64,000 nt of DNA from Cyanophora paradoxa CCMP329 (GCA_004431415.1 QPMI01000031.1:1-64000); one strand, 5' to 3'. Shown: positions 43,816 through 61,476, numbered from the stretch's first letter. Notes: generated by a model not told the origin, from the letters alone. Made by a program: numbers and translations.

Positions 43816-44303
43816 TCGCGCGGCCGACGCTCCGTAGTCCAGCCCGACCGAACTCCAAACCCAGCGAACATCGACCGCCCAGCCGCGGCCCCATGCCCGC
43901 CACCTCAGCGGAGACAGCAGCCACACCGTCGGATGCGCCCCCGGACGCACCGACGCCCCGCCCGCTGCTCACGGTCGCCTTTTTGAATGTCGAAAGCCTT
44001 GCAGGCATACCTCGGCGCATCTGGCTCACCGGATGGCTCAAGCGTACCAAAGTGGACGTCCTCGGCATCGTTGACCACCGGCTCAATCCGAAGCAGATCG
44101 CGGCCCTTACGCAGCGCATCGAATCATCGTGGCGCGTGCTCATCCCGCCCGCCGCAGAGCTTAAACCCAACGTCTGGAGCCGAGGCACCGGTTTCCTCGT
44201 CCGCAAAGCCATCCCGGCCCTCCCCGGTGCTACAGCCACGCTCGTGCCCCTCCCGCCCACGCCGGGCCTGCGGCCGCACGATGCTTCACTACTTCGCCTC
44301 TCC
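43816..44303 (+). repeat. 488-bp direct copy of the 5' end of the non-LTR retrotransposon at 55578-56065
   Basis: Appears identical by eye from tcgcgcggccgacgctcc to acttcgcctctcc. Encodes the same APE N-terminus. Confidence 0.92.
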
Positions 44304-44555
44304 CCAAGTTTCAAACTGAACGGAGTTTGCGTCACGCCCCGCCCATTGTTAACTTCTTCCGCCAATGAAATTAGCCCAGCGCAAACTTGAGCTCGAACTT
44401 GGCCTCGTACACAGTGGCGTACACACGCGGCCACAACGGTCACAGTAACGGTCAGCAGGCCGGCTTGCTAGTCAGCTTCCCTCGGCTAGGCCGGACTAGC
44501 TAGCTTCCCGCCATCGCGCACGCCCGAGCGCGAGCATTCCTGCACGCCGCCGTGC

Positions 44556-46483
44556 ATGAAGCAGTCAAAGCGAAAGGAACCCAGCCTCTGGGATGACGGC
44601 TTCGACGAGGCCCGACGTCGGCACCGCTGGCACGGCAAGCGACCCGACAGCAGCAGCTCGTGGGCCGGCAAGGGCAACATGAAGCGTGTCAACAAGATCA
44701 CTCAGCAGGCGCGCAAGGCGAAGGAGCCCAAGCTCCCTGACCTCGACATCCTCAAGGGCGAGCACCCCGCGGCAACGGTCCGCTGCCTGGACACCAGCGG
44801 CCGCGCCTACCACGTTCGCCTTGGCGACTTCGTCATCTGTTCAGTTAGCTCAGACACCCAGCTGTGTCCAGAACTCAGCGTCGTTCGCCCGAAGCCCTTC
44901 CATTTCCCGCGCCCAGGTGAAACGATTTTGGCGCGAGTCGAGGGCGAGTTCCCAACACAGACGAAGGCGAAGCGCGGCGACTTCAACTACTCCGTCAACG
45001 GCGTCATCCTTCGGCGCTTCGTGCGCCCGGAGGACTCCGATGTGAAGGACTGCGGGCTCGGCAGCGTGATCATCAAGGCAGACGGGGAGCAGGCAGCCGT
45101 GGCCATCGCAAACCACCTCATCTACTACTCGAACGTGACGGTCCGCCCGCCGCGCCCGCGCCCCGTTCCAGCGTCCGATGCCCGTGCGCGCAGGTTCACG
45201 CACCCGCGAAGGTGGTGGCCGCGGACGAGTACAAAGCCCTCAACCACGCCGATCCCCACATCTACGTCTGTAAGCAAATCATGACGTTCCCGGGCGACGG
45301 CTCCTTCCAGTTCGACGTCGCCCTCGCCTTCAACGCGAGGCTCAAGCGAGTGGCGAAGAAGAAGATGGCGTGCTTCCTCCGGCCGCTGTCGAGGCCGGAG
45401 GAGCGCGTGGAGGCGATTGGCTACCTTCAGGACGCCGCCGCGAACGCCCTCAAGCGCCGGAAGACCGGGACGCAGCTTGTCAACGTCAAGATCCCGGTGG
45501 CCGGGCCGGCAATGTTGGTCTGCGGCTCTTATGACTCGTTCGAAGTTCTTTTTCCTATCCTCTAACGGTGCGCATCGCAGGAGAACATCGTGGCGCAGGT
45601 CGCGCACGTCGCCACGCCCATCGACCCGAAGACGGGCCAGCCGATCCCGGTTGACAAGCTGCCGGCGGCGAATCGCTTCGTTATCGAGCTTCCGGACCGC
45701 GAGACCGCTGCTGGTGGAAGCCGCTTCCTTTTTCCCGCTCGCTGTTCTTTTTCCGACCTCTTTGCAGCTGTTCTCGGTCCCTCCGGCGTGGCGCAAGCGT
45801 CCAAGCGCGTCTGCAAGCGGGACGCGGACGGGAAGGCGATCCGGAAGCACAGCGAGATGCAGACCGTCACCGTCGAGAAGGCGTACGGCGGCTTAATCGT
45901 GCCGCGCCACACGGGCTCCCATGACGTCGTCCAGTTCGACGAGCGTGCGCCCGGCCCGCCCTCGCCGCGCCGCTCGCTTACGAAGCTCTGCTCCTTGGGC
46001 GCGGCAGGTCCCGGTCGGATCGTGGCCACGAAGCGCTCGGGCAGGAAAGGTGGGCACGTCACGCTCGAGCTTCCGAGCTACGAGTACGGCCCCGACGGCG
46101 AGCGCATCGCCAGCCTCGCGGGGCCCCTCGCGGCTGTCCCCGTGAAGCGCCCGCGCCGGTGCCGCGCCGGCGCCAACACCGTCGCCAAGGCGCCGCCTGT
46201 CCCCGAAGCAGCCCCTTCAGAACCTGCCGCCGCCGCCCTGCCGGCCCCCGCCGCCGCCGCCCTGCCGGCCCCCGCCGTCGCCGCCCCGCCGGCCCCGCCG
46301 CCGCCGCCCTGCCGGCCGCCGCCGCCGCCGCCCGCCCGCCCCCGCCCCGCCGGTCGCCGCCCTGTCGGCCCCTGCTGCTGCTGCCCCACCGGCCGCTGCC
46401 GCCCTACCTGCCCCCGCCGCATCCGCCTCGGTCCCCAAGTGCGCCCCCTCCCCTCGCCCCCGCTCGGCTACTTGCTCGCCTAA
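44556..46483 (+). CDS. BAH (bromo-adjacent homology) domain-like protein, spliced
   Basis: YHVRLGDFVI..ILARVE..LRRFVRPED..LIYYSN..VHAPAKVV..DEY..IYVCKQ follows the BAH pattern (GD.V; IARI; WF.RP.E; ELF.S; G.C.V; F.C). Basic N-terminus and Pro-rich C-terminus. Confidence 0.65.
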
Positions 46484-46596
46484 TCCTGCAGCAGGAAGGA
46501 TCGCGCGGCACAGCTCGCGGCCGCGGTGGCGGCGCGCAAGAGGGCAAAGTCGTGAAGCTGCTACTGAGAATCGCACTATCTAGGTTACAAGGTGCG

Positions 46597-49500
46597 CTAT
46601 GTCTGGTCCAAATCCATTTCGTCTATTTCCCCCTCCGCTAGATCGTCTGCTAGAACCTCTGCTAGGGCCCTATCATCGAAATCGAGCATGTTGGCGCCCT
46701 CATCCTCCGCCTCCATCTCCTCCTCCGCCTCCTCCTCTGCCTCGGCGTCGTACTCGGCGGTCTCCTCCTCCTCCTCCTCCTCGTCCCCGCTCTCCTCGGG
46801 CACCTCGTCCTCCGGCACCGGATCCCCTCCTGCAGCTCAATATCCTCGTCGATCTCCTCCTCGTCCGCAGGCAGGGGCACCGCTGCCACCTCCTCGCCCC
46901 CGGCGGCGCCGCCGCCGCCCCTTCGCCCTGCATAGCCGCTGACCGGTGGGACGGGCCGCAGGTCGGGGGATGAAGGGCCCATCTGGCCAGGCCTTGGCGG
47001 CGACGGGCGCGTCGTACTCGGCGTGGGCAGCGTCCTTCCCGCCGGCGCTCGCCTCCGTCATGTTCCGCATCCACAGCGCCAGGCGCCGCCGCTGGTGCGT
47101 CATGATCTGCTTGAGCATGTCGAGGTCCTTGTTCCACCCGCCACCGAGAGACGTGACGGTGTGTCGCAGGCGCCGAAGGAGGCCCATGTAGGACTCGATG
47201 ACCTCGCAGCTCCAACGGCCGGGCGCGTTCGTGTTGTCGACGCGCGCCCAGAACGCGAGGTGCGCAAGCGTCGAGTGCATGTAGCGTGTGAAGATCTTCC
47301 ATAACGGGAAGTGTGTCTCCATCAGGCCCTGGAGCTCGGCGACGGCCTCGATAACTTGCTGCCGCGCCTCCTCGTCGGGCTTCATGTTCCGCTCGTACTG
47401 GTAGATGATCTGGCGGAGCTGCCAAATCTCGTGCATGCCCCTCGTCTTCTCGCTCCAGCTCTCCTTACTGTCGCCGAAGCAGATGCTGAAGAGGGTGTCG
47501 GGCGCCTCGGGGTCCTCCAGGATCTTCTTGGCGGTGTTGGCGGAGATCTTCTGGAAGAACTTGTAGGTGGCCCCGTTCTCGGTCTTCTCGAACTTGATGT
47601 TCCGCGCGTATTTATCGCGAAGATGACGCTGCAGGTCTTCGATGCGCTTCTGCTGGTCCTCGGAGGCACCACAGGCGAGGGCGAGGAAGAAGTAGACGAA
47701 GAACCCGGCCACCCAGCTCTTGATGCCGTGCAGGGCGTCGTCGAGCCGGACCTGAGGTGCGCGTTGGCGTCCGCTGAGGCGAGGTGTCGCGGGCTTCTCA
47801 CCTCGACGGCAGCGACGGGCAGCATGCTGTTCGGGAGCGGCTGCAGGAGGGCGTTGGCGTCGTGCTCGGGGGTGCGGATTCTCTGTTCGCTGGCTGGAGG
47901 GAGGCCGTCCCGATCCCGCGGCCCTGCTGCGCGCACGACTTCGACCGCCGAGCAATCGGACCTGCAGTAACGTGAGCCCCATGCCGAATCTCAGCGCGTG
48001 TGACTCGGCGAACTGACCCGCGTCGGTGGACAGAATCGCAGTGCGGGCACAGGTCGAAGCCGAGGAGGACGCGGAGGAACTTGTAGTCGCCCGTCACCAA
48101 GAATTCGACCTCGACGGGCTTGTCGTGCTCGTACCCGGGGATCAGGGTGAGCGGGTTCTCGTTCAGGTACTCGACCATGTCGGCGAGGGGCTTGATGCGT
48201 GGGCGCAGGTTCTCCTCGCTGTCGCTACCGCCGAAGAGCATTAGGGGCAGGAGGGCGTAGCAGCTCTGAACGCCCTTCAGCGGGTGGTACGCCTGCGTCC
48301 CGTCCTCCTCGATGACGTAGTAGCCGTCGACGATTGCCACGATGCAGGTCATGCCGTCGGTCGTGGAGACGCTCTTCCCGCGGAACGCGATCGTCCCGTC
48401 GCCCGCCAGGCGGACTCGAGGTCTGATCTTCTTCCCCCTGTGCTTGTGCAGCGGGACGAAAGCGCTGATGAGGGCCGACAGGGCGGGCGTCGGCGTGACA
48501 GCTCTGCGGGGCGGCGGCGCTGCCGCCTCTCCGCCCGCCGCCGGCGCTGCCGCCTCTCCGCCCGCCGCCGGCGCTGCGCTCGACGGAGGCACAAAGAGCT
48601 CGAGCATGACGCCCGGCTTGCCCTTGTTCTCCTCGTCGCCGACGCCCGCCGCTGTTTCGACGATCTGCACGATCTGCACCGCTCGGTGAGCCTCGTCCCT
48701 CACCCCCGCCCCGCGCGCGCGCGCCGCGCCTTCTCGAGGTCATCGTTGACCTTGCCCCGTAGCTTCGTGATGCAGTGCTTCGACGGGAGGAAGGCTCGCA
48801 GCCCCACGAAGTGCTTCTTCAGGGCCTTCTTGAGGAGCTTCGTGAACTCAAAGTACGTCGCCTGCCCGGGTCGGTTTAGAACGGGATGGGGGGTTAAAAC
48901 ATTCGAGAAAGGGCGCACGTCCGAGATGCAGTGGCGGTCCTTCCACTCTAGAATCTCGCAGTCGGGAAGGTGTCCCGCAGCTTCCTGCAGGCGATGCTCA
49001 TCGCCTTCTTCACTTGCAGCTGACCCGATTTGCTCGTTTCCAGGGCTCGTTGGGCCTGCGGACGGTGGTTCAGAAAGGTGCTCTTCTCCAACGATTTTGT
49101 AGCCTATTAAAGTACGATTCTCGGTAGCTCTTTTTATGTATAATAACGCGCACTGCGTGTGGCCCGATGATGCTCACGAGGCGGCGTGCCTCCGCCTCCA
49201 GCGCCTCCCTCCTCTTCTGATAGGCGCCCTCCTCCTCTCCTTTGTTCCTGGGGCGCCCTGGATAAGCATGCATATGCCTGCGCGCGCGCCGCCCCGCCTT
49301 GTACCTCGCGAAGTTCTTTTTAAACATGGGGAGGCGGATCTGGATGTCCGGACTCGCAGCGTTTAGAATCGTCGAGAGCAGCATGCGGAGGAACCGCGTG
49401 CGCCGCTGCCTGGACGTATCCGAGCATCCCTTCCCAGGGACCTGCCTAGCTATGCGCGAGATGGTCGCTGCACGCTGTGCCGAAGTCCGCGGGACCTTGG

Positions 49501-50442
49501 CGCGCTTCGACTGGTGCTCCTCCCTAAGCTTCTTGTTCTCCGCCTCAAGCACTGCGATGCGCTCGTCGCGCGCTTTGAGCGTCGCCTTGCGGACGATCCG
49601 CTCCTCAGGCGGCACATCTTCCTTGCCGCGAGCGCGTTTCGGGGCGGTGCCGGGGCCGGGGGCCGGCCGCGGCGCCGGGCTCGGCGCCTCATTAAGAACT
49701 GCATTCGTCTGCTCGCGGCCGGGCAGAGAGCATACACTCGTAAGCGCGGGCAAGTCAAGTCATGACATCGAATTTGAATGAGCGGCATACCACGTCGGCG
49801 CCGAACGCGCGACGACCGCGCTGCTGCTGCTGCTCTGGGCTAATCTGAGGCGATTGCGGGCTCGCTGGAGCCGATGGCGACCCGGGTGGCGAAGCTGGAG
49901 GGCTCTGCAGGATGCACTGGAGGAACACAGCCACTGCGGTGGCCTCTTGAAGCGCCGCCGTGCAAGCTAAGCTATGCGGATACAATGGAGACGCAATGCC
50001 GCGCGCCTCCAGTTCCAGGTGGGCGTTTCGGCTGTGGGTGAGCACTGCGATGATCCGCATAAGCGCCTGGTACGCGACCGACGCGTCCGCCATCTCTAAA
50101 ACGACTGCTGCGGGCGCTGGAAACGTTTGGGGCGCGGGCTGGGCCGCGGGACGGGGCGCGATGGGTCGCTGCATCGCGCGGGCGGGTTCAAAACTCGGAA
50201 AAAAAGATCGCGTGTACCTCCCCTGCCATCTGCGGAAGCGGCAGCTCCGAGCGCCGCGAGCAAGCATACACATCCGCGACAGTTAGGCGCCGAAGAGCAG
50301 CAGGCGAGCCCAGCATGCGCGATAATGCGCAATTGCGATGCATAGCTACCTTAGGCGAAGCGGCTGGTCCACCCGCGCGGTCCTTGCCGGCCGCGATGCT
50401 CGCTCGTCGATATGGGTATGACGCGCTAAGCAAGGGGAGCAT
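46597..50442 (-). CDS. RAG1/Transib-like DDE transposase (spliced, acidic C-terminal tail)
   Basis: Motifs in RAG1-core order: RVRLAGDG (D 48398-48400), FLVTGDYKFL (D 48086-48088), CPHC (48038-48049), DALH (47728-47739), TRYMHSTLAHL (YMHSTLAH 47260-47283), GRWSCEVIES (E 47194-47196). 5' exons are approximate. Apparent 1-nt frameshift near 46825. Confidence 0.82.
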
Positions 50443-50576: not shown

Positions 50577-51309
50577 ATGCCCGCTGACTACGTGTCCGAG
50601 GAGGAGGACCAGGAGGAGACCATCAACGCGCCGTGCAATCGCCCAATGACTTCGTCTGTCATCGAGATCAACAGCAGCGACTCGGAGAGCGATGGACCAG
50701 CGGCAGCGCGCCGAGCGCAGGGCGCGCATGAAGGCGGACGAGGAGCGCGCGCTCGAGGAGGAGGATGAGATCAGGCGGCGCCACCAGGCAGCTTTGGAGG
50801 TCAACCTCGCAATAGAGCGCGACTCGGTGAGGCCATACAAGCTGGCCGAGCTCAAGCAGTTGCTGGAGTACGCGCGCGCGTGGATGCGCGAGCACGAGCA
50901 GCTGTACGAGCAGTTCGAGGTCGCGCTGGCGCACAACAACCTCCTCGAGGCCATTAACCTGCGGTCGGAGATCCGCAAGCACCGCAGCACGGCGCGCTTC
51001 TGCGGGCAGGACCCCCTCGGGCTCTACGAGGAGGCGGCCTTCAAGCCTCTCTATGACAACGTGACGGCCTTGCAGCGGCGGGCGGGGCAGATGGAGCATT
51101 TCGGCGACAATCTCTTCAAGTGCGCGGAGCACTTCCAGCGGGTGCGCATCCGGCAGCAGCAGGCGGCGGCGGCGGCGGCGGCGGAGGCGGCGGAGGCGGC
51201 GGCGGAGGCGGACGGGGCTGCTGCTGCTGCTCGGTGCAAGCGCCGCCGCCTGCGTCGCGGCGACGGCGTGCTCGTCTCGCGGCCGGACGATGCCGACGAC
51301 GAAGCGTAG
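50577..51309 (+). CDS. Hypothetical alpha-helical protein, divergent from the transposase
   Basis: ORF 50692-51309 with strong GC3 codon bias. A likely acidic N-terminus from ATG 50577 lies in another frame. Confidence 0.55.
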
Positions 51310-53080: not shown

Positions 53081-54884
53081 TCATCCGATGAGAGCTCTAG
53101 CTATGCAGGACGAAGCGAGCGGGCCGGGGCTAGCGCCCGATGGCGGGCGCCTCGAAAGGCGACGTCTCCGGCGGCACAGCAGCGTGTAGCTGCTGGACCG
53201 CGGCGACCCACCCTGCGACCCTAGGCCCCGGGGTTCCCGCATGAGCACGTCCCTCATGTAGAGATACTCGATAACGGCCTCCAGCTCCTCCACCTCCTTT
53301 ATGTACATGCGCTCCTCCTTCCGCCACACCTTCGCCTCACGCTCCAACTCCAAGTCCCAATTCCTCTTCATCCTTGAGACCTGCGCCGCGCCGCGTTACG
53401 CGCCAGCGGGCGCACGCACGCGTGTGGGCAATCGCGGACCTTGTTTTCCAAGTCATCCACCTTCGTCTGCAGCGCAGCGTTCTGGTTCTGCAGCTCCTCG
53501 CACTCCTCTTCGAGGTTTTTGACCCGAGTCGCTCTCTGCGGGCGCCGGAGGGACCGCCGTCAGCAGCGCATTGCGGGCGCCGGCGGCGCGGGCGGCGCGG
53601 CGGCCGGCGGGCTCACCAGACTGGCGTTGAGCTGCATCATCTCCTTCTCCAGCTGAGCGATCTTCTCCTCCCGTTGAGCGATCTGCCGCTGCTTCTCCCT
53701 GTTGGCCCACCGCAGATCAGGGAGCTCCCGCTCCAGGGAGCTGCACTTCTGTTGGAGCTCCTCACGCTGCGCCGGTGCACGGAGGAACACGTCGACTTTC
53801 GCCTTCAGTTGATTGGCGAGCTCCGCGCCAGTTAGACCCTTGTCTAGGACATCCTGCGGCCCGAATCAGCGAGGCAAGCTGCGGGCGAAGCGCACGGCGG
53901 CGTGAAACGGCGCGCGCACACGCTGCTGAAGGTACTCGATCGCTTCAAGGAGCTTGGACGCCATGCGAACCGCATCGGAAACCCGCTTGCAGCCGGTGAG
54001 CCTCCGATAGAGTGCGGCGTCCTCCTCCTCGATGCGAAAGCGGTGCCGCCCGGGCTTGTCCCAGGGGTGAATCGATCTTCCTCCTCGCCCGTCATCTCGA
54101 CATCGCACTTGCGCCGCTTGCACTGCTGCTTGGTGGACGTGGCGGGCTTCTTCGGGGCTGGCTTCTTCGCGGCTGAGCTGGCAGGCGACGGCGCGACAGA
54201 GGGATCGTCCATATACCGCTCCATGGCAACGAAGGGATCCTCATATTGCTCGCTCGGTGCCGCCGCGGGCGAAGGCTGGGAGGTCGCCGCCGCTGCCCGC
54301 TTGCGACTCACGCGCTTAGGCATGTCCACGGGGGTCGCTGGCGAGGCCGCTGCCGCCGGCGGCTGCGTGCGTGGAGGCGTGGCCGGCTGATCATGCGAAG
54401 GCTGCGATTGCGAGGGCGCAGCTACTACCCGCTTGCGACGCGGGCGATCAGGCGTGTACACGGGGGTCGCTGATGAGGCAGCTGCGACAGGCGGCGTACA
54501 CGGCTGTACAGGCGTACCCCCCCCCAAAGGCGTCCCTGGCGTCTCACAGCAGCCGCTGCCGGGGCTCTGCTCGAGCTCTGAGCGTACTGGCGAGACTTGT
54601 GGGGAGTCGCTCCCGCCCGCCGGCTCCGCCGCGGGAGGCGCCAGCGCGACCGCGGCCGTCGCATGCGCAGCTGGCGCTGCATGCGCAGGCTGAACGACTT
54701 GCTCGCTCAAAGCTGCGTCGCCAAAGTCGTCTGGATTCACGTCCTCGCCGAGGTCGTCCTGGCTGCCGCAGGTGCTGCCGCCAATCTGGCCGTGCCGCGG
54801 CCTGCCATCGCTGGCGCCGCCCAGCCACGCTCTAATGGAACCGAACGCTGAGCCGACCTTGGCAGACAGCACAGAGAGCGGCAT
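53081..54884 (-). CDS. Hypothetical protein: low-complexity Pro/Ser/Thr N-terminus and spliced coiled-coil C-terminus
   Basis: ORF 53844-54884 followed by heptad-like exons (REELQQKCSSLEREL..; VKNLEEECEELQNQNAALQTKVDDLENK; MYIKEVEELEAVIEYL). Confidence 0.55.
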
Positions 54885-55577: not shown

Positions 55578-58500
55578 TCGCGCGGCCGACGCTCCGTAGT
55601 CCAGCCCGACCGAACTCCAAACCCAGCGAACATCGACCGCCCAGCCGCGGCCCCATGCCCGCCACCTCAGCGGAGACAGCAGCCACACCGTCGGATGCGC
55701 CCCCGGACGCACCGACGCCCCGCCCGCTGCTCACGGTCGCCTTTTTGAATGTCGAAAGCCTTGCAGGCATACCTCGGCGCATCTGGCTCACCGGATGGCT
55801 CAAGCGTACCAAAGTGGACGTCCTCGGCATCGTTGACCACCGGCTCAATCCGAAGCAGATCGCGGCCCTTACGCAGCGCATCGAATCATCGTGGCGCGTG
55901 CTCATCCCGCCCGCCGCAGAGCTTAAACCCAACGTCTGGAGCCGAGGCACCGGTTTCCTCGTCCGCAAAGCCATCCCGGCCCTCCCCGGTGCTACAGCCA
56001 CGCTCGTGCCCCTCCCGCCCACGCCGGGCCTGCGGCCGCACGATGCTTCACTACTTCGCCTCTCCAGCGACACCAACGCATACAGCATTATCTGCCTCTA
56101 CGCCCCTAATGACGCGGCCTCGCAGAAGCGCCTGGCGGCAGGCGTCACCCAGGCGATCGAATCGCTCCAGCTTCCCCCGAACGACGCCCTCATTCTAGGC
56201 GGCGACCTAAACGCCTACGCGCTCCCGCATTTAGAAAGCCGCCGCCGTGCCGGCGCACCGCCCCCCTTCGGGCACTGGTCCGATCTCATGGCTGACTTGG
56301 ACCTGTTCGACGAACATCGCCGCAGGCGGCCGCGAGACCGCATATACACGCGCTGGCACCGCAAGACGAACCGCTTCGACCAGAACGCGGCGCGACTGGA
56401 CTACGTCCTCCTCTCAGCCGACCTCTGCGTCGCGGCGGAGCGCGTCGGTATCCTTCGCACGGCGGGCGCGGCCCCGCGCCCTGACCACGACGCGGTCTAC
56501 GCGCGGCTCCATACGGACGCCGTCATCGCGCCCCGGGCGGCCCGCTTCAGGCTCCACGACCGCATCCTCCACTTCCCGCCGTTCCAGCGGTCCGTGCGGG
56601 CCTGCACGGCCGAAGCGCTAACTCGCCAGCCGGCTCTCTGCACCGTGGAGTGGCAGCGCTGGCTCGACGAGCTCTTCGCTGAATACAGGGAGATCGCCCG
56701 CCGTACCCGCCCCAGGCTGACTCGGAGGTCCGAGACGCCCGCGAAGTGATCGCAGGCCTCTGGCGCGACGCGGAACAAGCGCTCCAAGACGCGGAGGTAG
56801 ACACCACCGAAGAAGACTACGCGGTCGCCGATATGGGCTACCTGACCATCCAGGAAGCAGCGCTCGACGCCGCAGACGCGGCTCTTAGCTCCCGCAAGCA
56901 CCTAGAACGCTCCCTCGCGCACGCGCACACAGTCCCCCCCGAGCTCGCCCGTCATATTAAGTACTCCTCGGCCGACAACCGTATGCGCTCGCTGCAGCCG
57001 TACCCCCGCGAGAGGGTACCCCGGCGGCCACGACGGAGGAAGACATGGCGGCGCACGCCTGCGCATACTACACGGAGCTCCTCGCGGCCCAACGCCCGCT
57101 TCCCCCCGACCTCCCGGCGGCCACGCCGCCCTCGGCTCCGGCGGCCCCGGCCCGCCGCCAAGAACCACGGGCAACGGAGCATTCCAATGCTCGCCCAGGC
57201 ACCACCACGGGGTCGGAGCCTGAAGGCGCTCGCCCGTACCAGGGAACGGCTAGGCCGAACCCGCAGACCACGGGGCCCGAGCCGGAAGGCGCTCGCCCGT
57301 CCTTGGAACCGGGAGCCTCGGGCCCCGTGGACGTGACGCCGGAAGCCACCGCCGCTTTCCCGGCGGTCGTCGAGAAGCTGCGCGCTGCCCACCTTCTCAC
57401 CCCCGCCGACCCCCTCACGTGTGAGGAAGCCGAGCTCTTGTCCCGCTGCCTCGATACAGCGCCCCCGCCCTTGCACCCCCCGATGTGCGCCCCCTATACG
57501 GTTGGCGAGATCGAGGAAAGCCTAAAAGAGATGAATAAGTCGACAGCGCCGGGCGAGGACGGCCTCTCTGTAAAGTTCTATCTCACGTTCTGGAACATCC
57601 TCGGCCCGATAGTCACAGAAAGCTATAACTGCGCGCGCGCGCTGGGCACCCTATCGGAGCGCCAACGCACGGGGCTAATCCAACTGCTCTATAAGAAAGG
57701 AGACCGCGATAAAATCCAGAACTGGCGCCCAATCACCCTCCTGCAAATAGACCGCCGCCTCTTCGGAGCGGTTCTCGCGAAGCGCATAGCGCCCGCCTGC
57801 CAGCACACTATCAGCTCCGTCCAAACGGGCTTTATGCCGGACCGCACCGGGGCAGACAACGTCTGGCAGATGCAAGCCGTCATCCGTCACGCGGACCGTA
57901 CGGACCAGCATGTCGTGATACTAAACACCGACTTCGAGAAAGCGTATGACCGCGTAGAACACCTCTATGCGCTCCGGGTCCTAGCGGTCCAGGGCTTCCC
58001 GCCCGAATTCCTCGCCGACGTCCGAGCTATCACGAAAGGCGCTAGATCAAAAGTTATGATCAACGGGCAGATCTTCCCAACCATCATCCCGGTTACGCGC
58101 AGCGCTCTCCAGGGCGACCCATTCGCATGCATGTTCTTCAACACGCAGCAGGAGCCCACCACGCGAGACATCCTCGCGGACCCCGAAATCACAGGCGTAC
58201 CCGCCCCTCGGGACCCCGGGATCGAATCCAAGCTGGTCCAATACGCCGACGACGCAGCGCACTCGCTCAAGATCAATCCCCGCAGCCCAGACCCTGGCCT
58301 GCCCGTTAAGAAAACCATAGCTAAGTACCAGAAAGCAGGGAAGTACAACGGCTCCTCGCTCAATCTCGGCAAAACCGAAGGCATGCTCGCGGGAGCCGCA
58401 GCACCGACAAAGCGGCCCGGCCACCCAATCACCCTCCCAGCATGGACCCAAGCGATTCCGATCCGCTGGGTCAAGTCCACGTCCACGCTCGGTATCCCGC

Positions 58501-60660
58501 TCGGCCCGAGGGGCGAATTTGACGCCCGCCCTTACTGGGCTAAGCGTGTAGACGGGATGCGCAGCCGGAGAGCTCGCTGGAACCTGCGCGCGATGCGCGT
58601 CCACCAACGCGTCTACGTAGCCACGGCCATCGTGGCGTCTGTTAATATGTACGCGGCCGCGTTCCTTCCGTGCCCCCCGTCGGCCCTCCAAGCCATTAAG
58701 GACGAATACTGGGCAGCAATATGGCCCTCGTCCGCAGATGCACCCGCCCGGAAGCGCAGCGCGCGCGGCCGGATATCACGAGCGAAAGCTGTCCTCCCAC
58801 CGTCCAACGGCGGCCTCGGAGCACTCGACCTTGAGAGCCGCCTCCTGGCGCAAGCAGGCACGTACATTCGAGCGCTCTGTGACCCCTCCTTCGCGGTTTG
58901 GAAGCTTTTCGCCGCAGAAGAGATGCAGGAACTAGTGCCCAAGAAATACGCGGCGGCCGCGCAGGCCCTCGGCCTCAACGCGCTGGGCGCCGACCTCCGC
59001 TTCCGCCCGTATGCAGCCCTCCTCCCTGCTCAGGGGCCCCTCGCACCAGCGGTGCGCATCCTCACGCTCCTACGACCCCCGGAATCGGGCCCGACCCCCT
59101 CCGGTGCCCGCCGCACCGCGCAATCGCGTCCCTGCCGCTCACGCGGGATCGCCTCAGGGCGGAGCCGCTCTGGCTCAACCCGGTGCTCGCCCCGCCTGGC
59201 CAAACCTGGGGCATAGGCAAAATTGATGAAGCCCTCGCCGCCCGGCTCACTGCCGCCCACCAGATCACCGGCCCCGCGCCCCAAGACCTCTCCCAGGCCG
59301 CGTACACGCGCCTGAATGAAATCCGCGCCCAGGTCCGCCTTCGCGCAGCCCAGCTCGGCCTCGCCCCTCTCGACACGCCCCCCCAAGCTATCCTCCCCGG
59401 GCCGACCCTCGGATATGGCTGATCGCAGCCCCAGCAGAAGCTGGCGCTGGCCCCAGAAGGCCGCGCTCAGGCCCGATCATCTTCGCGACCCCAGGCACCC
59501 CGCCGCTGGGCTGCACGACCAGCACAATGCCCGACGGCACCATAGTAGGCCCGCCCGGCCCCCCCGCGCCCCTCCCAGCCGCCCCCGCGCTCCTCCCCCG
59601 CGCCCTGATCATCGCCGTCCCACCGGGGTCGGCGAAACAAAAAGCCCGGTGGCCAGACGGCCGCGCCGTGACCGCGGGCCGCCTCGACCGCGCCCCCTGG
59701 ATCCACACCGGGCTCCTCTACCGGACCCCGACCGGCCCCCGCCCCTGGCTCCACTACCGCATCTCGGCGGGCTACCGCGCCCTCCGGGCCCAGCCCCCCC
59801 GCCCGGCCCCCGGCCCTCTCGCCCGCTTCGGCCCCCCGCCCCCCGGCAAATGCTGGACCCAGGTGTGGGGCGCGGGCACGCAACATGCCCACCTGTCCCC
59901 GTGGAACCGCGAGACCTGGCTCTGGGCCACCCACGCTTGCCTCCCCGCCGGCCAATTCCTTTTCCATATTGGGGCTCGCCCGACCCCGTTCTGCTGCGCC
60001 TGCCCCGGCTCCGATGTACCCCCCGATACCTCGGACCATGCAGTCTTCTACTGCGAGCCCGCGCGCGCGGCCTGGGAGGAACTGCTCGATAGGTGGAACG
60101 ATTTCTACGGCACCTCTATCCCCCTCGAATGCGCGCACGCCCTCACCGGATTCCTAGCCGTCCCAGAAGAGCTTAAAAAGCGCCGCACCGGCTCCGCACG
60201 CCAGAGACGCGAATTCCGCATGCCTCGTAGCCTGCTAGCGGCCCTGGCGGGCCTCATGATCAGCGCTGCATGGTCAGCCCACGTCCGCGCCATCCAGGAC
60301 AACGCCCCCGACAGCACCGACAACACGCCCCGCCGCCCTACCAAGAAATCGATCTGGCAAGCATTTGAGCGCGCAGTCTGGGCCCGCACCCTCCTAGAGC
60401 AGAGCAAGATCGAGCTCGCCACCCGGGGCCTCCCCCAGGACGCGACGCAGCCAACTTTAGACCCGGACACAGTGGCCTGGAACTGGGAGCCGGCCGACCC
60501 CGACGCGCCCCCGGACGCCCCGGCACCCCCACTCCCCCAGGCGCTCTGGACGGCAGACAGCTTCATTGCCACAGCCCACCGCTCAGCACACGAAACAACC
60601 CTCACCCGCGGGCCCCTCCTCGACCCGCCGCCGGACTCAGACCCCGACAGCGACGACTGA
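55578..60660 (+). mobile_element. L1/Tx1-like non-LTR retrotransposon pol (APE endonuclease, RT, CCHC zinc finger), several frameshifts
   Basis: APE: AFLNVESL, CLYAPN, ILGGDLN, RLDYVLLS, PDHDAV. RT: APGEDG, NWRPITLL, QTGF, DFEKAYDRV, QGDP, YADD (58242-58253), GGLG. Zinc finger: CCAC..DHAVFYC. Confidence 0.93.
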
Positions 60661-60698
60661 GGCCGCGGCGCCCGGACGCCGTCACTCCCAGGGGCACT

Positions 60699-61476
60699 TC
60701 AGCCCCGCCGGCCGCTCATGCGCGATCGCCTCCAGCCCGTTCGCGGCCGTCCCATCACCTTCCTGCGGACGGGGCAGAACAATGAGAGAAACAACGGGAC
60801 CAGCTGCAGAGCCCCGCTGCGCACCAGGAAGTCCATCGCTTGATCGACGGTGAGGAACCGCCGAGAGTCCCGACCCCGGACCCCCGGCACCCGCCACACC
60901 TGGGCCAGAGCGCACTCCCGCCCCGGATAGGTCTCCGTCTGATCCCTGAGCGTAGCGCGAGAAGACGGCCCCCAGCGTGACCGGCGACACCGCGTCATAA
61001 GCGCTGACGAAATCCGCAGCACACAGCGCGCGAGGCGCAGCTGCGCACCAGATCGAGTAAATCCCGGGCCGAATCCCATGGCGCACTGCATAAAACGCCA
61101 GCGTACTCTTCTTCGCGACCTGCGAGCACCCAGGATAGGGCAGCTCGTAGAAGTACGCCCGTACTACGCCATCACGAAACATCGCGGCCGCGGCACGCAG
61201 ATGCCCGCGGAGCGTCCTCAACATCGGGAAAGCCGCAGGCACGACCTCGCCAGGGCTCGAGCCGGCGCTCCCAACTACGACAGCGTCGTCCGCAAAACCG
61301 CTTAGAACCTCGCCATCGCTCAACTCGGCTGCAGCCGGGGTCGCAGAAACGCGGTCTTCGCCAACCGCAGCCCGCTTCGCCGAAGGCTCACCCGCGGACG
61401 ACTCACTCCCGCTACGCTCCCGCTTGCAATCCGCCTCGCAGCCGGGGCCCGGCGCTCCCTCGGGCATATCCGCCAT
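60699..61476 (-). CDS. Small protein with an RNase H1 N-terminal hybrid-binding (Caulimovirus viroplasmin, Cauli_VI) domain
   Basis: FYAVRHGIRPGIYSIW, intron 60946-61048 (GT..AG), then DQTETYPGRECALAQV..SRRFLTVDQAMDFL. Matches the pattern FYAV..G..PGIY..W..C..QV....K.F.T.EEA..FL. Confidence 0.72.

Follow-up and report, generated by a model that had tools for sequence, protein, structure and literature searches.

A probable RAG1/Transib-type transposase and its convergent partner gene in a young, multi-copy element of Cyanophora paradoxa

Two genes lie tail-to-tail at positions 44556-50442 of a 64,000-nt stretch from the glaucophyte Cyanophora paradoxa CCMP329 (QPMI01000031.1:1-64000; hereafter, the window): a spliced minus-strand gene for a putative transposase and, converging on it, a plus-strand partner gene. 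We think it likely, rather than assured, that this pair forms the core of a young, multi-copy and multi-gene cut-and-paste transposon, whose transposase would belong, as a very divergent member, to the RAG1/Transib kind. A sequence-only reading of the same region had gone further, proposing that a RAG1-family transposon in a non-animal lineage recruited a chromatin reader with a BAH domain as its partner. Our analysis supports the first part of this proposal for the transposase, while the BAH domain found no confirmation in any search.

Results

Catalytic and zinc-site motifs of the minus-strand gene

The spliced proteins used here were taken from the annotators' models P0005 (a paralog), P0012 and P0019, the exons of which had first been checked against the window; the annotators' model for this locus itself is tig00000944_g5968.t1 (P0001). 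The translation of 46960-47751 is an exact substring of P0005 (residues 599-862), as is that of 48032-48451 (residues 401-540), and the frame-2 translation of the middle transposase exon equals the matching part of the same model. The motifs that the sequence-only reading had quoted, namely LAGDG, TGDYK, CPHC, DALH, YMHSTLAH and SCEVIES, were all found on the minus strand where it had placed them, in the order and with the spacing of RAG1. Their key codons are those for the Asp of LAGDG (48398-48400), the Asp of TGDYK (48086-48088), the two cysteines of CPHC (48047-48049 and 48038-48040), the His of DALH (47728-47730), the two histidines of YMHSTLAH (47275-47277 and 47260-47262) and the Glu of SCEVIES (47203-47205), which in P0005 numbering correspond to D418, D522, C535/C538, H606, H757/H762 and E781. 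All catalytic and zinc codons are intact in the window copy, again as had been claimed, although the frame is broken elsewhere as assembled (see below).

The core of mouse RAG1 has the catalytic residues D600, D708 and E962, the zinc ligands C727, C730, H937 and H942, and H795. The distances between these landmarks are 108, 19, 87, 142 and 20 residues in the mouse protein, compared with 104 (D418-D522), 13 (D522-C535), 84 (D522-H606), 151 (H606-H757) and 19 (H762-E781) in P0005, and at the motif level the second Asp and the Glu are separated by 254 and 259 residues, respectively. Short strings are held in common as well: HSTLAH corresponds to HKTLAH of RAG1, and the pattern G-x-W-x-x-E-x-x-ES to GAWASEGNES. 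In the minus frame, GC content by codon position is 0.59/0.41/0.90 and 0.62/0.38/0.92 for the two core exons; these third-position (GC3) values of 0.90-0.92 mark the minus strand as the coding strand over the transposase core.

The transposase also contains a 27-nt tandem duplication at ~48515-48570 (nine residues, AAPAAGGEA-type). A contig of the RNA-like run X19 has one repeat unit fewer, and this difference is a copy or strain polymorphism.

Fold and feature matches of the transposase

RAG1 is the best match for the transposase both in the fold of its zinc-histidine (ZnH2) domain and in language-model features. When residues 390-880 of P0005 were used in a language-model feature search, the nearest entries were RAG1 clusters (score 0.94; 185/256 features in common), which are annotated RAG1_RNase_H, RAG1_ZnC2, RAG1_ZnH2 and RAG1_pre-RNase_H and carry PF26100, PF26101 and PF26104; eight of the ten best family-bearing matches belonged to one family or clan. 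AlphaFold2, run without an alignment, produced a transposase model with a mean predicted local distance difference test (pLDDT) score of 42, in which only residues ~430-545 of the modelled fragment reached 70-82. Despite this poor model, the Foldseek comparison with RAG1 that the sequence-only reading had suggested gave mouse RAG1 as the top three chains of the PDB (E 0.06, probability 0.96), and a VIA second look placed 12 RAG1 entries on top (Z 8.5-10.2, ~148 residues, root-mean-square deviation 4, 17-22% identity).

A search independent of Foldseek, covering 48,161 representative chains, ranked zebrafish RAG1, three mouse RAG1 chains and amphioxus BbRAGL first to fifth (Z 10.0 to 8.4, ~148 residues, root-mean-square deviation ~4 A, 15-22% identity). 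The structural alignment pairs residues 402-572 of the model (P0005 601-771) with RAG1 790-951, in a register that sets H606 against H795 and H757/H762 against H937/H942.

The pair as part of a larger, multi-copy unit

The two genes belong to a unit that is larger than two genes, young and present in multiple copies. Near-identical annotated models of the transposase occur on nine contigs, and those of the partner likewise on nine; on tig00021374, partner (g21138) and transposase (g21139) have consecutive gene numbers. DNA evidence came from the unitigs of a DNA run (X1), in which depth was 1757 for the partner, 1141 for the transposase core and 966 for its N-terminal part, while rare junction contigs had depths of 44-60; if the latter are single-copy, the family would number ~20-35 copies. 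A single unbranched unitig (X1 record 3, depth 1141) spans 48544-46357 and crosses the intergenic gap into the partner tail, and therefore essentially every copy with the transposase 3' half has the partner tail next to it. Recurrence of the pair as a unit with shared ends had been put forward as a check on the sequence-only reading: the unbranched unitig and the consecutive genes on tig00021374 bear out the recurrence, but the ends were not found.

Several contig junctions, read as introns, are non-canonical on either strand. Three of them (45143|46929, 46896|47933 and 47501|48554) are also present in the DNA run, and the first joins the partner to the transposase gene; four more were found at 49787|50804, 49208|54424, 45197|54713 and 45811|~54712. 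We interpret these junctions as copies with internal deletions, of the sort that cut-and-paste transposition usually leaves behind. Given that such deletion-derivative junctions link 45.1 kb with 54.7 kb, the element is at least 10 kb long and contains about four genes. The third gene, which has a very strong coding signature, and the fourth open reading frame (ORF), which are listed in Table 1, gave no Pfam match. Long introns were also considered for 49787|50804, 49208|54424 and 45197|54713 and rejected, as canonical splice sites exist on neither strand.

Spliced antisense RNA over the transposase core

RNA evidence was drawn from contigs of three RNA-like runs from three studies (X15, X17 and X19). 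In these public data, the transposase core is represented mainly by a spliced, non-coding antisense RNA, the joints of which are present in the three RNA-like runs and missing from the DNA run; the splice dinucleotides were confirmed on the sequence. Its exons offer no continuous open frame. The plus strand was accordingly rejected as a coding strand over 47-49 kb, where a GC3 of 0.9 falls on the minus frame. Each of the annotators' three sense introns in this region (47752-47801, 47962-48017 and 48674-48750) is overlapped by an antisense intron at an offset of 5-16 bp. To the left of 47044, the main antisense contig runs into sequence foreign to the window, so that the start of this RNA may lie beyond the element or in a different copy.

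Antisense RNA of this kind is more in keeping with silencing, or with transcription that reads through from beyond the element, than with active production of transposase. In Cyanophora, RNA interference (RNAi) with RNA-dependent RNA polymerases is present and antisense small RNAs are frequent (PMC3700990); its repeats are methylated (bioRxiv 10.1101/2025.04.15.648976). Given these two features, it is plausible that the antisense transcripts could serve as a silencing substrate.

The lone sense-strand intron of the transposase seen in RNA lies at 49248-49304 (57 nt). It is in frame on the minus strand (CT..AC on the plus strand) and comes from one RNA contig; its removal would drop 19 residues, including a GRPR motif (~49250-49261), and both the spliced and the unspliced form stay in frame. 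The motif recalls the GRP motif in the nonamer-binding domain of RAG1 (PMC9435367).

Weighing the transposon and its RAG1 kinship

With fair confidence, we regard the transposase as truly belonging to the RAG1/Transib kind, though as a very distant member. D418, D522 and E781 (P0005) would form an RNase-H-type DDE centre, braced by a zinc site made of the CxxC pair past the second Asp and the HxxxxH pair ahead of the Glu, and the long helical domain between DALH and HxxxxH would correspond to the ZnH2 domain of RAG1. Excision would proceed by nicking, followed by formation of a hairpin on the flanking DNA, and insertion would create a short target duplication, as expected from the family. Like the number of copies and any part played by the partner, this cutting mechanism is one that we infer.

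A series of results speaks against this interpretation, and they concern, first, the kinship with RAG1. Pfam and PDB sequence searches were run at a threshold of E<=10, using a copy of Pfam that includes the RAG1 domain families and the PDB, which contains RAG1, BbRAGL and HzTransib chains as searchable targets. At this threshold, P0005 and the exon ORFs of the window matched no Pfam family, including those of RAG1/Transib (PF12940, PF26100, PF26101 and PF26104) and CACTA-type or other transposase superfamilies, and the transposase matched no RAG1, BbRAGL or HzTransib chain; overall, the PDB sequence searches gave chance matches only (an ankyrin protein at E 0.02; gp120). HMMER, run with the last exon against 1.84 billion protein representatives, recovered only the family's own paralog models and one spurious repeat protein. 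The structural model is poor, and the fold match covers the helical ZnH2 domain only, with the RNase H and ZnC2 parts absent from the model. By the search tool's own caution, helical models can reach Z ~10 by chance, and unrelated chains follow RAG1 closely at Z 8.0-8.4 in the search of 48,161 chains. HzTransib is missing from all structure-match lists, and an atlas shape search with the poor model reached TM<=0.24, a value of no meaning given the quality of that model. It is the sensitive methods, and these alone, that support RAG1 kinship. The label RAG1/Transib-like, as given by the sequence-only reading, stands on the motifs, the language-model features and the ZnH2 fold, but not on a sequence match in Pfam, the PDB or HMMER.

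The remaining counter-evidence comes from the locus. Terminal inverted repeats, CAC-type ends with a mate in inverted orientation and a target duplication were all looked for in the window and not found. Inverted repeats within 40-56 kb were limited to GC-rich low-complexity matches, and 44.3-44.6 kb did not align with the reverse complement of 54.85-55.6 kb. A high-depth DNA unitig begins at ~44419, shortly after a CACAGTG at 44410; neither this heptamer nor the 19-mer at the unitig start has an inverted mate within the window. Sense splicing of the transposase core is absent among the RNA joints listed, and those of the middle exon are likewise not among them. The RNA check of splicing that had been suggested for both genes was therefore positive for the partner, whose introns appear in three studies, but not for the core of the transposase.

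Finally, the assembled copy carries frame breaks. Set against the multi-copy contigs from short reads, the window lacks a single letter at 46449, 46456, 46823, 46896, 46947, 48864 and 48963, and all seven gaps fall in runs of 3-5 identical letters. As assembled, the transposase frame is interrupted at four of them (48963 in an N-terminal exon; 46947, 46896 and 46823 in the C-terminal tail), and two shift the partner tail (46449 and 46456, each with an extra C in the short-read contigs). Once the extra letters are restored, the transposase C-terminus is unbroken to the stop at 46597, the partner stop moves to ~46570 and the intergenic gap shrinks to ~27 bp. The gaps are probably long-read consensus errors, and given this resemblance we do not call the copy dead. 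Homopolymer errors may also affect other gene models in this assembly.

An alternative explanation, which we consider unlikely, would place the transposase in a different DDE superfamily or in a broader clade without a name; its likeness to RAG1 would then consist of features found in many hairpin-forming transposases ([C/D]xxH, zinc braces). The lack of any profile hidden Markov model or phmmer link to RAG1 or Transib would fit such an origin, but Pfam provided no family of another transposase superfamily either, and the language-model matches are RAG1 families rather than other transposases. The structural comparison is one-sided: only the helical domain was modelled and matched, and no CACTA or Chapaev structure appears in any match list. 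We know of no CACTA or Chapaev transposase structure that has been solved. Nevertheless, RAG1 or RAG1L takes each of ranks 1-5 among the 48,161 chains. While no RSS-like (recombination signal sequence) ends were located in the window, the combination of a CxxC pair that follows the second Asp with an HxxxxH pair that precedes the Glu, at RAG1-like spacing, is, to our knowledge, specific to RAG1/Transib, and the strings around HSTLAH and the catalytic Glu are near-copies of those in RAG1.

The convergent partner gene and the BAH question

The partner gene is real, spliced in sense and expressed. Its convergence on the transposase had been estimated at about 115 bp between the stops and was confirmed at 113 bp as assembled. 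Its four introns, at 45141-45193, 45518-45580, 45714-45767 and 45945-46007, are canonical plus-strand GT..AG introns supported by RNA from X15, X17 and X19. Exon 1 matches models P0012 and P0014 at 100% identity, and the exon 1-2 junction of P0012 is the RNA junction; RNA contigs over exon 5 extend to 46235 and then break at a repeat. We treat the product as a putative accessory or passenger protein that is borne by the element and travels with the transposase. A further model from outside the window, P0021 (tig00020848_g14527; 803 residues), carries part of the partner gene in tandem duplication, with a few substitutions, and the partner is therefore also present in rearranged copies apart from the transposase.

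The BAH domain claimed for this protein was not recovered. By eye, partner residues ~85-215 recall what we take to be BAH signatures (a YHVRLGDFV strand, ILARVEGEF, RRFVRPED and LIYYSN), for which Pfam, PDB sequence and atlas feature searches gave no confirmation. Pfam at E<=10 returned no family, including BAH (PF01426), RAG2, Kelch and PHD, for exons 1-2, P0010 and P0012, the last tested as a whole model and as two sub-ranges. With the partner as query, the PDB sequence searches gave no BAH protein, and with P0012 no match, and the atlas feature search gave no usable match. A single-sequence AlphaFold2 model of exon-1 residues 60-195 was unusable (pLDDT 31.5), and a complex prediction of P0005:395-800 with P0012:70-300 scored 0.00, which we count neither for nor against an interaction. 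A BAH-like fold of the partner is conceivable, yet we lean against it.

The function that the sequence-only reading had built on this domain is decidedly doubtful. It would make the partner a BAH-type reader of nucleosomes or methyl-lysine that attaches to the transposase in order to guide or license transposition, as an independent analogue of RAG2 with its PHD finger. Apart from the pattern seen by eye, the proposal can draw on an expressed and correctly spliced gene, the convergent layout, a junction conserved across the family and the consecutive gene numbers on tig00021374. In addition, the transposase retains a long ZnH2 region, with 151 residues between H606 and H757 compared with 142 in RAG1, which binds RAG2 there; subgroup II Transibs have lost this region (PMC9435367). 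However, the element carries at least two further genes, making adjacency alone weak evidence, and partner copies outnumber transposase copies (depth 1757 vs 1141). PF01426 and all other families failed at E<=10 on exon 1, exon 2 and P0012, and no BAH protein came up in the PDB sequence searches. At present, the claim of chromatin-reader recruitment has gene order as its sole footing. Of the RAG1-RAG2-like two-gene layout, the tail-to-tail arrangement and its family-wide junction hold, whereas the unit is larger, with a length of at least 10 kb and about four genes, and the partner yielded no RAG2, kelch or PHD match.

Flanking retrotransposons and other features of the window

GC content across the window is 51-84% per 2-kb step and 57-71% beyond 42 kb. 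The unit is flanked by sequence of a non-LTR (long terminal repeat) retrotransposon: a 5' fragment on the left and a full-length copy on the right (Table 1). The latter matches PF03372 (Exo_endo_phos; E 2.9e-6 on 55655-56749) and PF00078 (E 3.1e-19 on 57045-59216). The borders of the retrotransposon copies showed no target duplication. The 488-bp repeats bracket an 11.3-kb unit; the left copy ends abruptly at 44303, and the 5' flanks of the two differ. Insertion into a retroelement with subsequent rearrangement, or mis-assembly, could each have produced this bracketing. Further to the right, a minus-strand ORF (60682-61476) has a weak match to PF01693 (RNase H1 N-terminal hybrid-binding domain, E 4e-4) and converges on the retrotransposon 3' end at a distance of 22 bp.

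That the pair consists of domesticated host genes or a segmental duplication rather than a mobile unit is highly improbable: host-like GC3 (0.83-0.92) and short introns, a well-expressed partner and the lack of located ends would agree with it, but the near-identical copies across many contigs, a unitig depth ~20-35x that of the rare junction contigs, the many internally deleted derivatives, the antisense RNA over the transposase core and the lower-GC surroundings, rich in transposable elements and beside retrotransposon copies, do not.

Table 1. Features of the transposon region and its flanks (positions counted from the first nucleotide of the window).
Feature	Position	Strand	Description
Partner exon 1	44556..45140	+	195 codons from ATG; RNA joint 45140|45194; GC3 0.83; stretch called BAH-like
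Partner exon 2	45194..45517	+	108 codons; RNA joints on both sides; GC3 0.90
Partner exon 3	45581..45713	+	RNA joints 45517|45581 and 45713|45768, GT..AG
Partner exon 4	45768..45944	+	RNA joints 45713|45768 and 45944|46008
Partner exon 5	46008..46483	+	Pro/Ala-rich low-complexity tail; stop 46481-46483 as assembled
Intergenic gap	46484..46596	.	113 bp between convergent stops as assembled
Transposase last exon	46597..47751	-	DALH, HSTLAH, catalytic Glu, acidic C-terminal tail; GC3 0.90; stop 46597-46599
Transposase middle exon	47802..47961	-	Linker from CxxC to DALH; from annotators' models; canonical GT..AG flanks
Transposase exon	48018..48673	-	First two catalytic Asp and CPHC zinc pair; GC3 0.92
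Transposase N-terminal exons	48751..50273	-	Models P0001, P0005, P0019; ORF begins 50273; annotators' start codon ~50090
Spliced antisense RNA over transposase core	47044..49044	+	11 GT..AG introns; three RNA-like runs
Antisense introns 1-6	47095-47169, 47260-47325, 47431-47479, 47567-47634, 47757-47812, 47972-48033	+	RNA joints
Antisense introns 7-11	48147-48208, 48287-48347, 48421-48481, 48686-48762, 48853-49043	+	RNA joints
Third gene	50692..51309	+	Divergent from transposase; GC 0.71/0.37/0.93; helix-rich; inside junction-bridged stretch
Fourth ORF	53844..54884	-	Low complexity; first ~100 residues are the N-terminus of paralog model P0007, fused there to transposase
Non-LTR retrotransposon 5' fragment	43816..44303	+	488 bp, 100% identical to 55578-56065, direct orientation; left of unit
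Full-length non-LTR retrotransposon	55578..60660	+	Endonuclease and reverse transcriptase; right of unit

Discussion

Transposases of the RAG1 type outside animals are not new, given the relatives already published: RAG1L-RAG2L transposons exist in the alga Aureococcus anophagefferens (AanRAGL), where the two genes are single-exon and co-directional and the elements have asymmetric terminal inverted repeats and 5-bp duplications, RAG1L is found in a chytrid, and Transibs occur in plants, fungi and bacteria (Tao et al. 2022, PMC9435367). In that paper's text and in the supplements available to us, Cyanophora is not mentioned. What is new here is the glaucophyte host, an extreme divergence that makes the family invisible to profiles, an intron-bearing architecture of several genes and a conserved convergent partner other than RAG2.

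The Cyanophora transposase resembles RAG1, RAGL and ProtoRAG in the order and near-identical spacing of the DDE triad, CxxC, HxxxxH and DALH, and it is to this group that its best ZnH2 fold and language-model matches belong. Similar to ProtoRAG and the vertebrate RAG locus, its gene converges on a second gene, and the algal host is a feature held in common with AanRAGL. In contrast to RAG1 and RAGL, it has no similarity to them that HMMER can detect, and its partner lacks a RAG2, kelch or PHD match. The unit also differs from RAGL and ProtoRAG in its size and gene content and from AanRAGL in that its genes contain introns and converge, while the RSS-like asymmetric inverted ends and 5-bp duplication of RAGL were not found in the window.

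Transibs most often have a single gene, a length of 3-4 kb and ends of the CACAATG type. Like them, the Cyanophora element would depend on a single-protein DDE transposase with a zinc site, lives outside animals and is multi-copy with deletion derivatives; unlike them, it comprises several genes, no CACAATG-type ends were found and HzTransib is not among the structure matches. The long region between DALH and HxxxxH seems to be kept, as in subgroup I and bacterial Transibs, in which its retention has been described, and unlike the shortened region of subgroup II (PMC9435367). The likeness of the partner to BAH proteins (PF01426; ORC1, Sir3, DNMT1 and others) is confined to the pattern seen by eye at residues ~85-215, and it differs from them in that Pfam, the PDB and the atlas gave no match.

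Few relatives of RAG1 are known outside animals (PMC9435367), and the Cyanophora family would add Glaucophyta to their hosts. A divergence that lies past profile detection suggests that the RAG1/Transib superfamily is wider than sequence surveys show. Being young and present in many copies with deletion derivatives, the family offers a tractable system for studying non-RAG2 accessory genes in RAG1-type elements, and likewise for asking how such elements are kept in check in an alga that has RNAi and DNA methylation. Recruitment of a chromatin reader, if true, would bear on ideas of how RAG2 was acquired. We judge it improbable that a RAG1-fold transposase which kept the region that holds RAG2 recruited an unrelated, tail-to-tail encoded partner, a degenerate BAH reader, docking there to direct or license cutting; were this the case, the division of labour between RAG1 and RAG2 would have been invented a second time and independently, in a lineage separated from vertebrates by more than 1 billion years.

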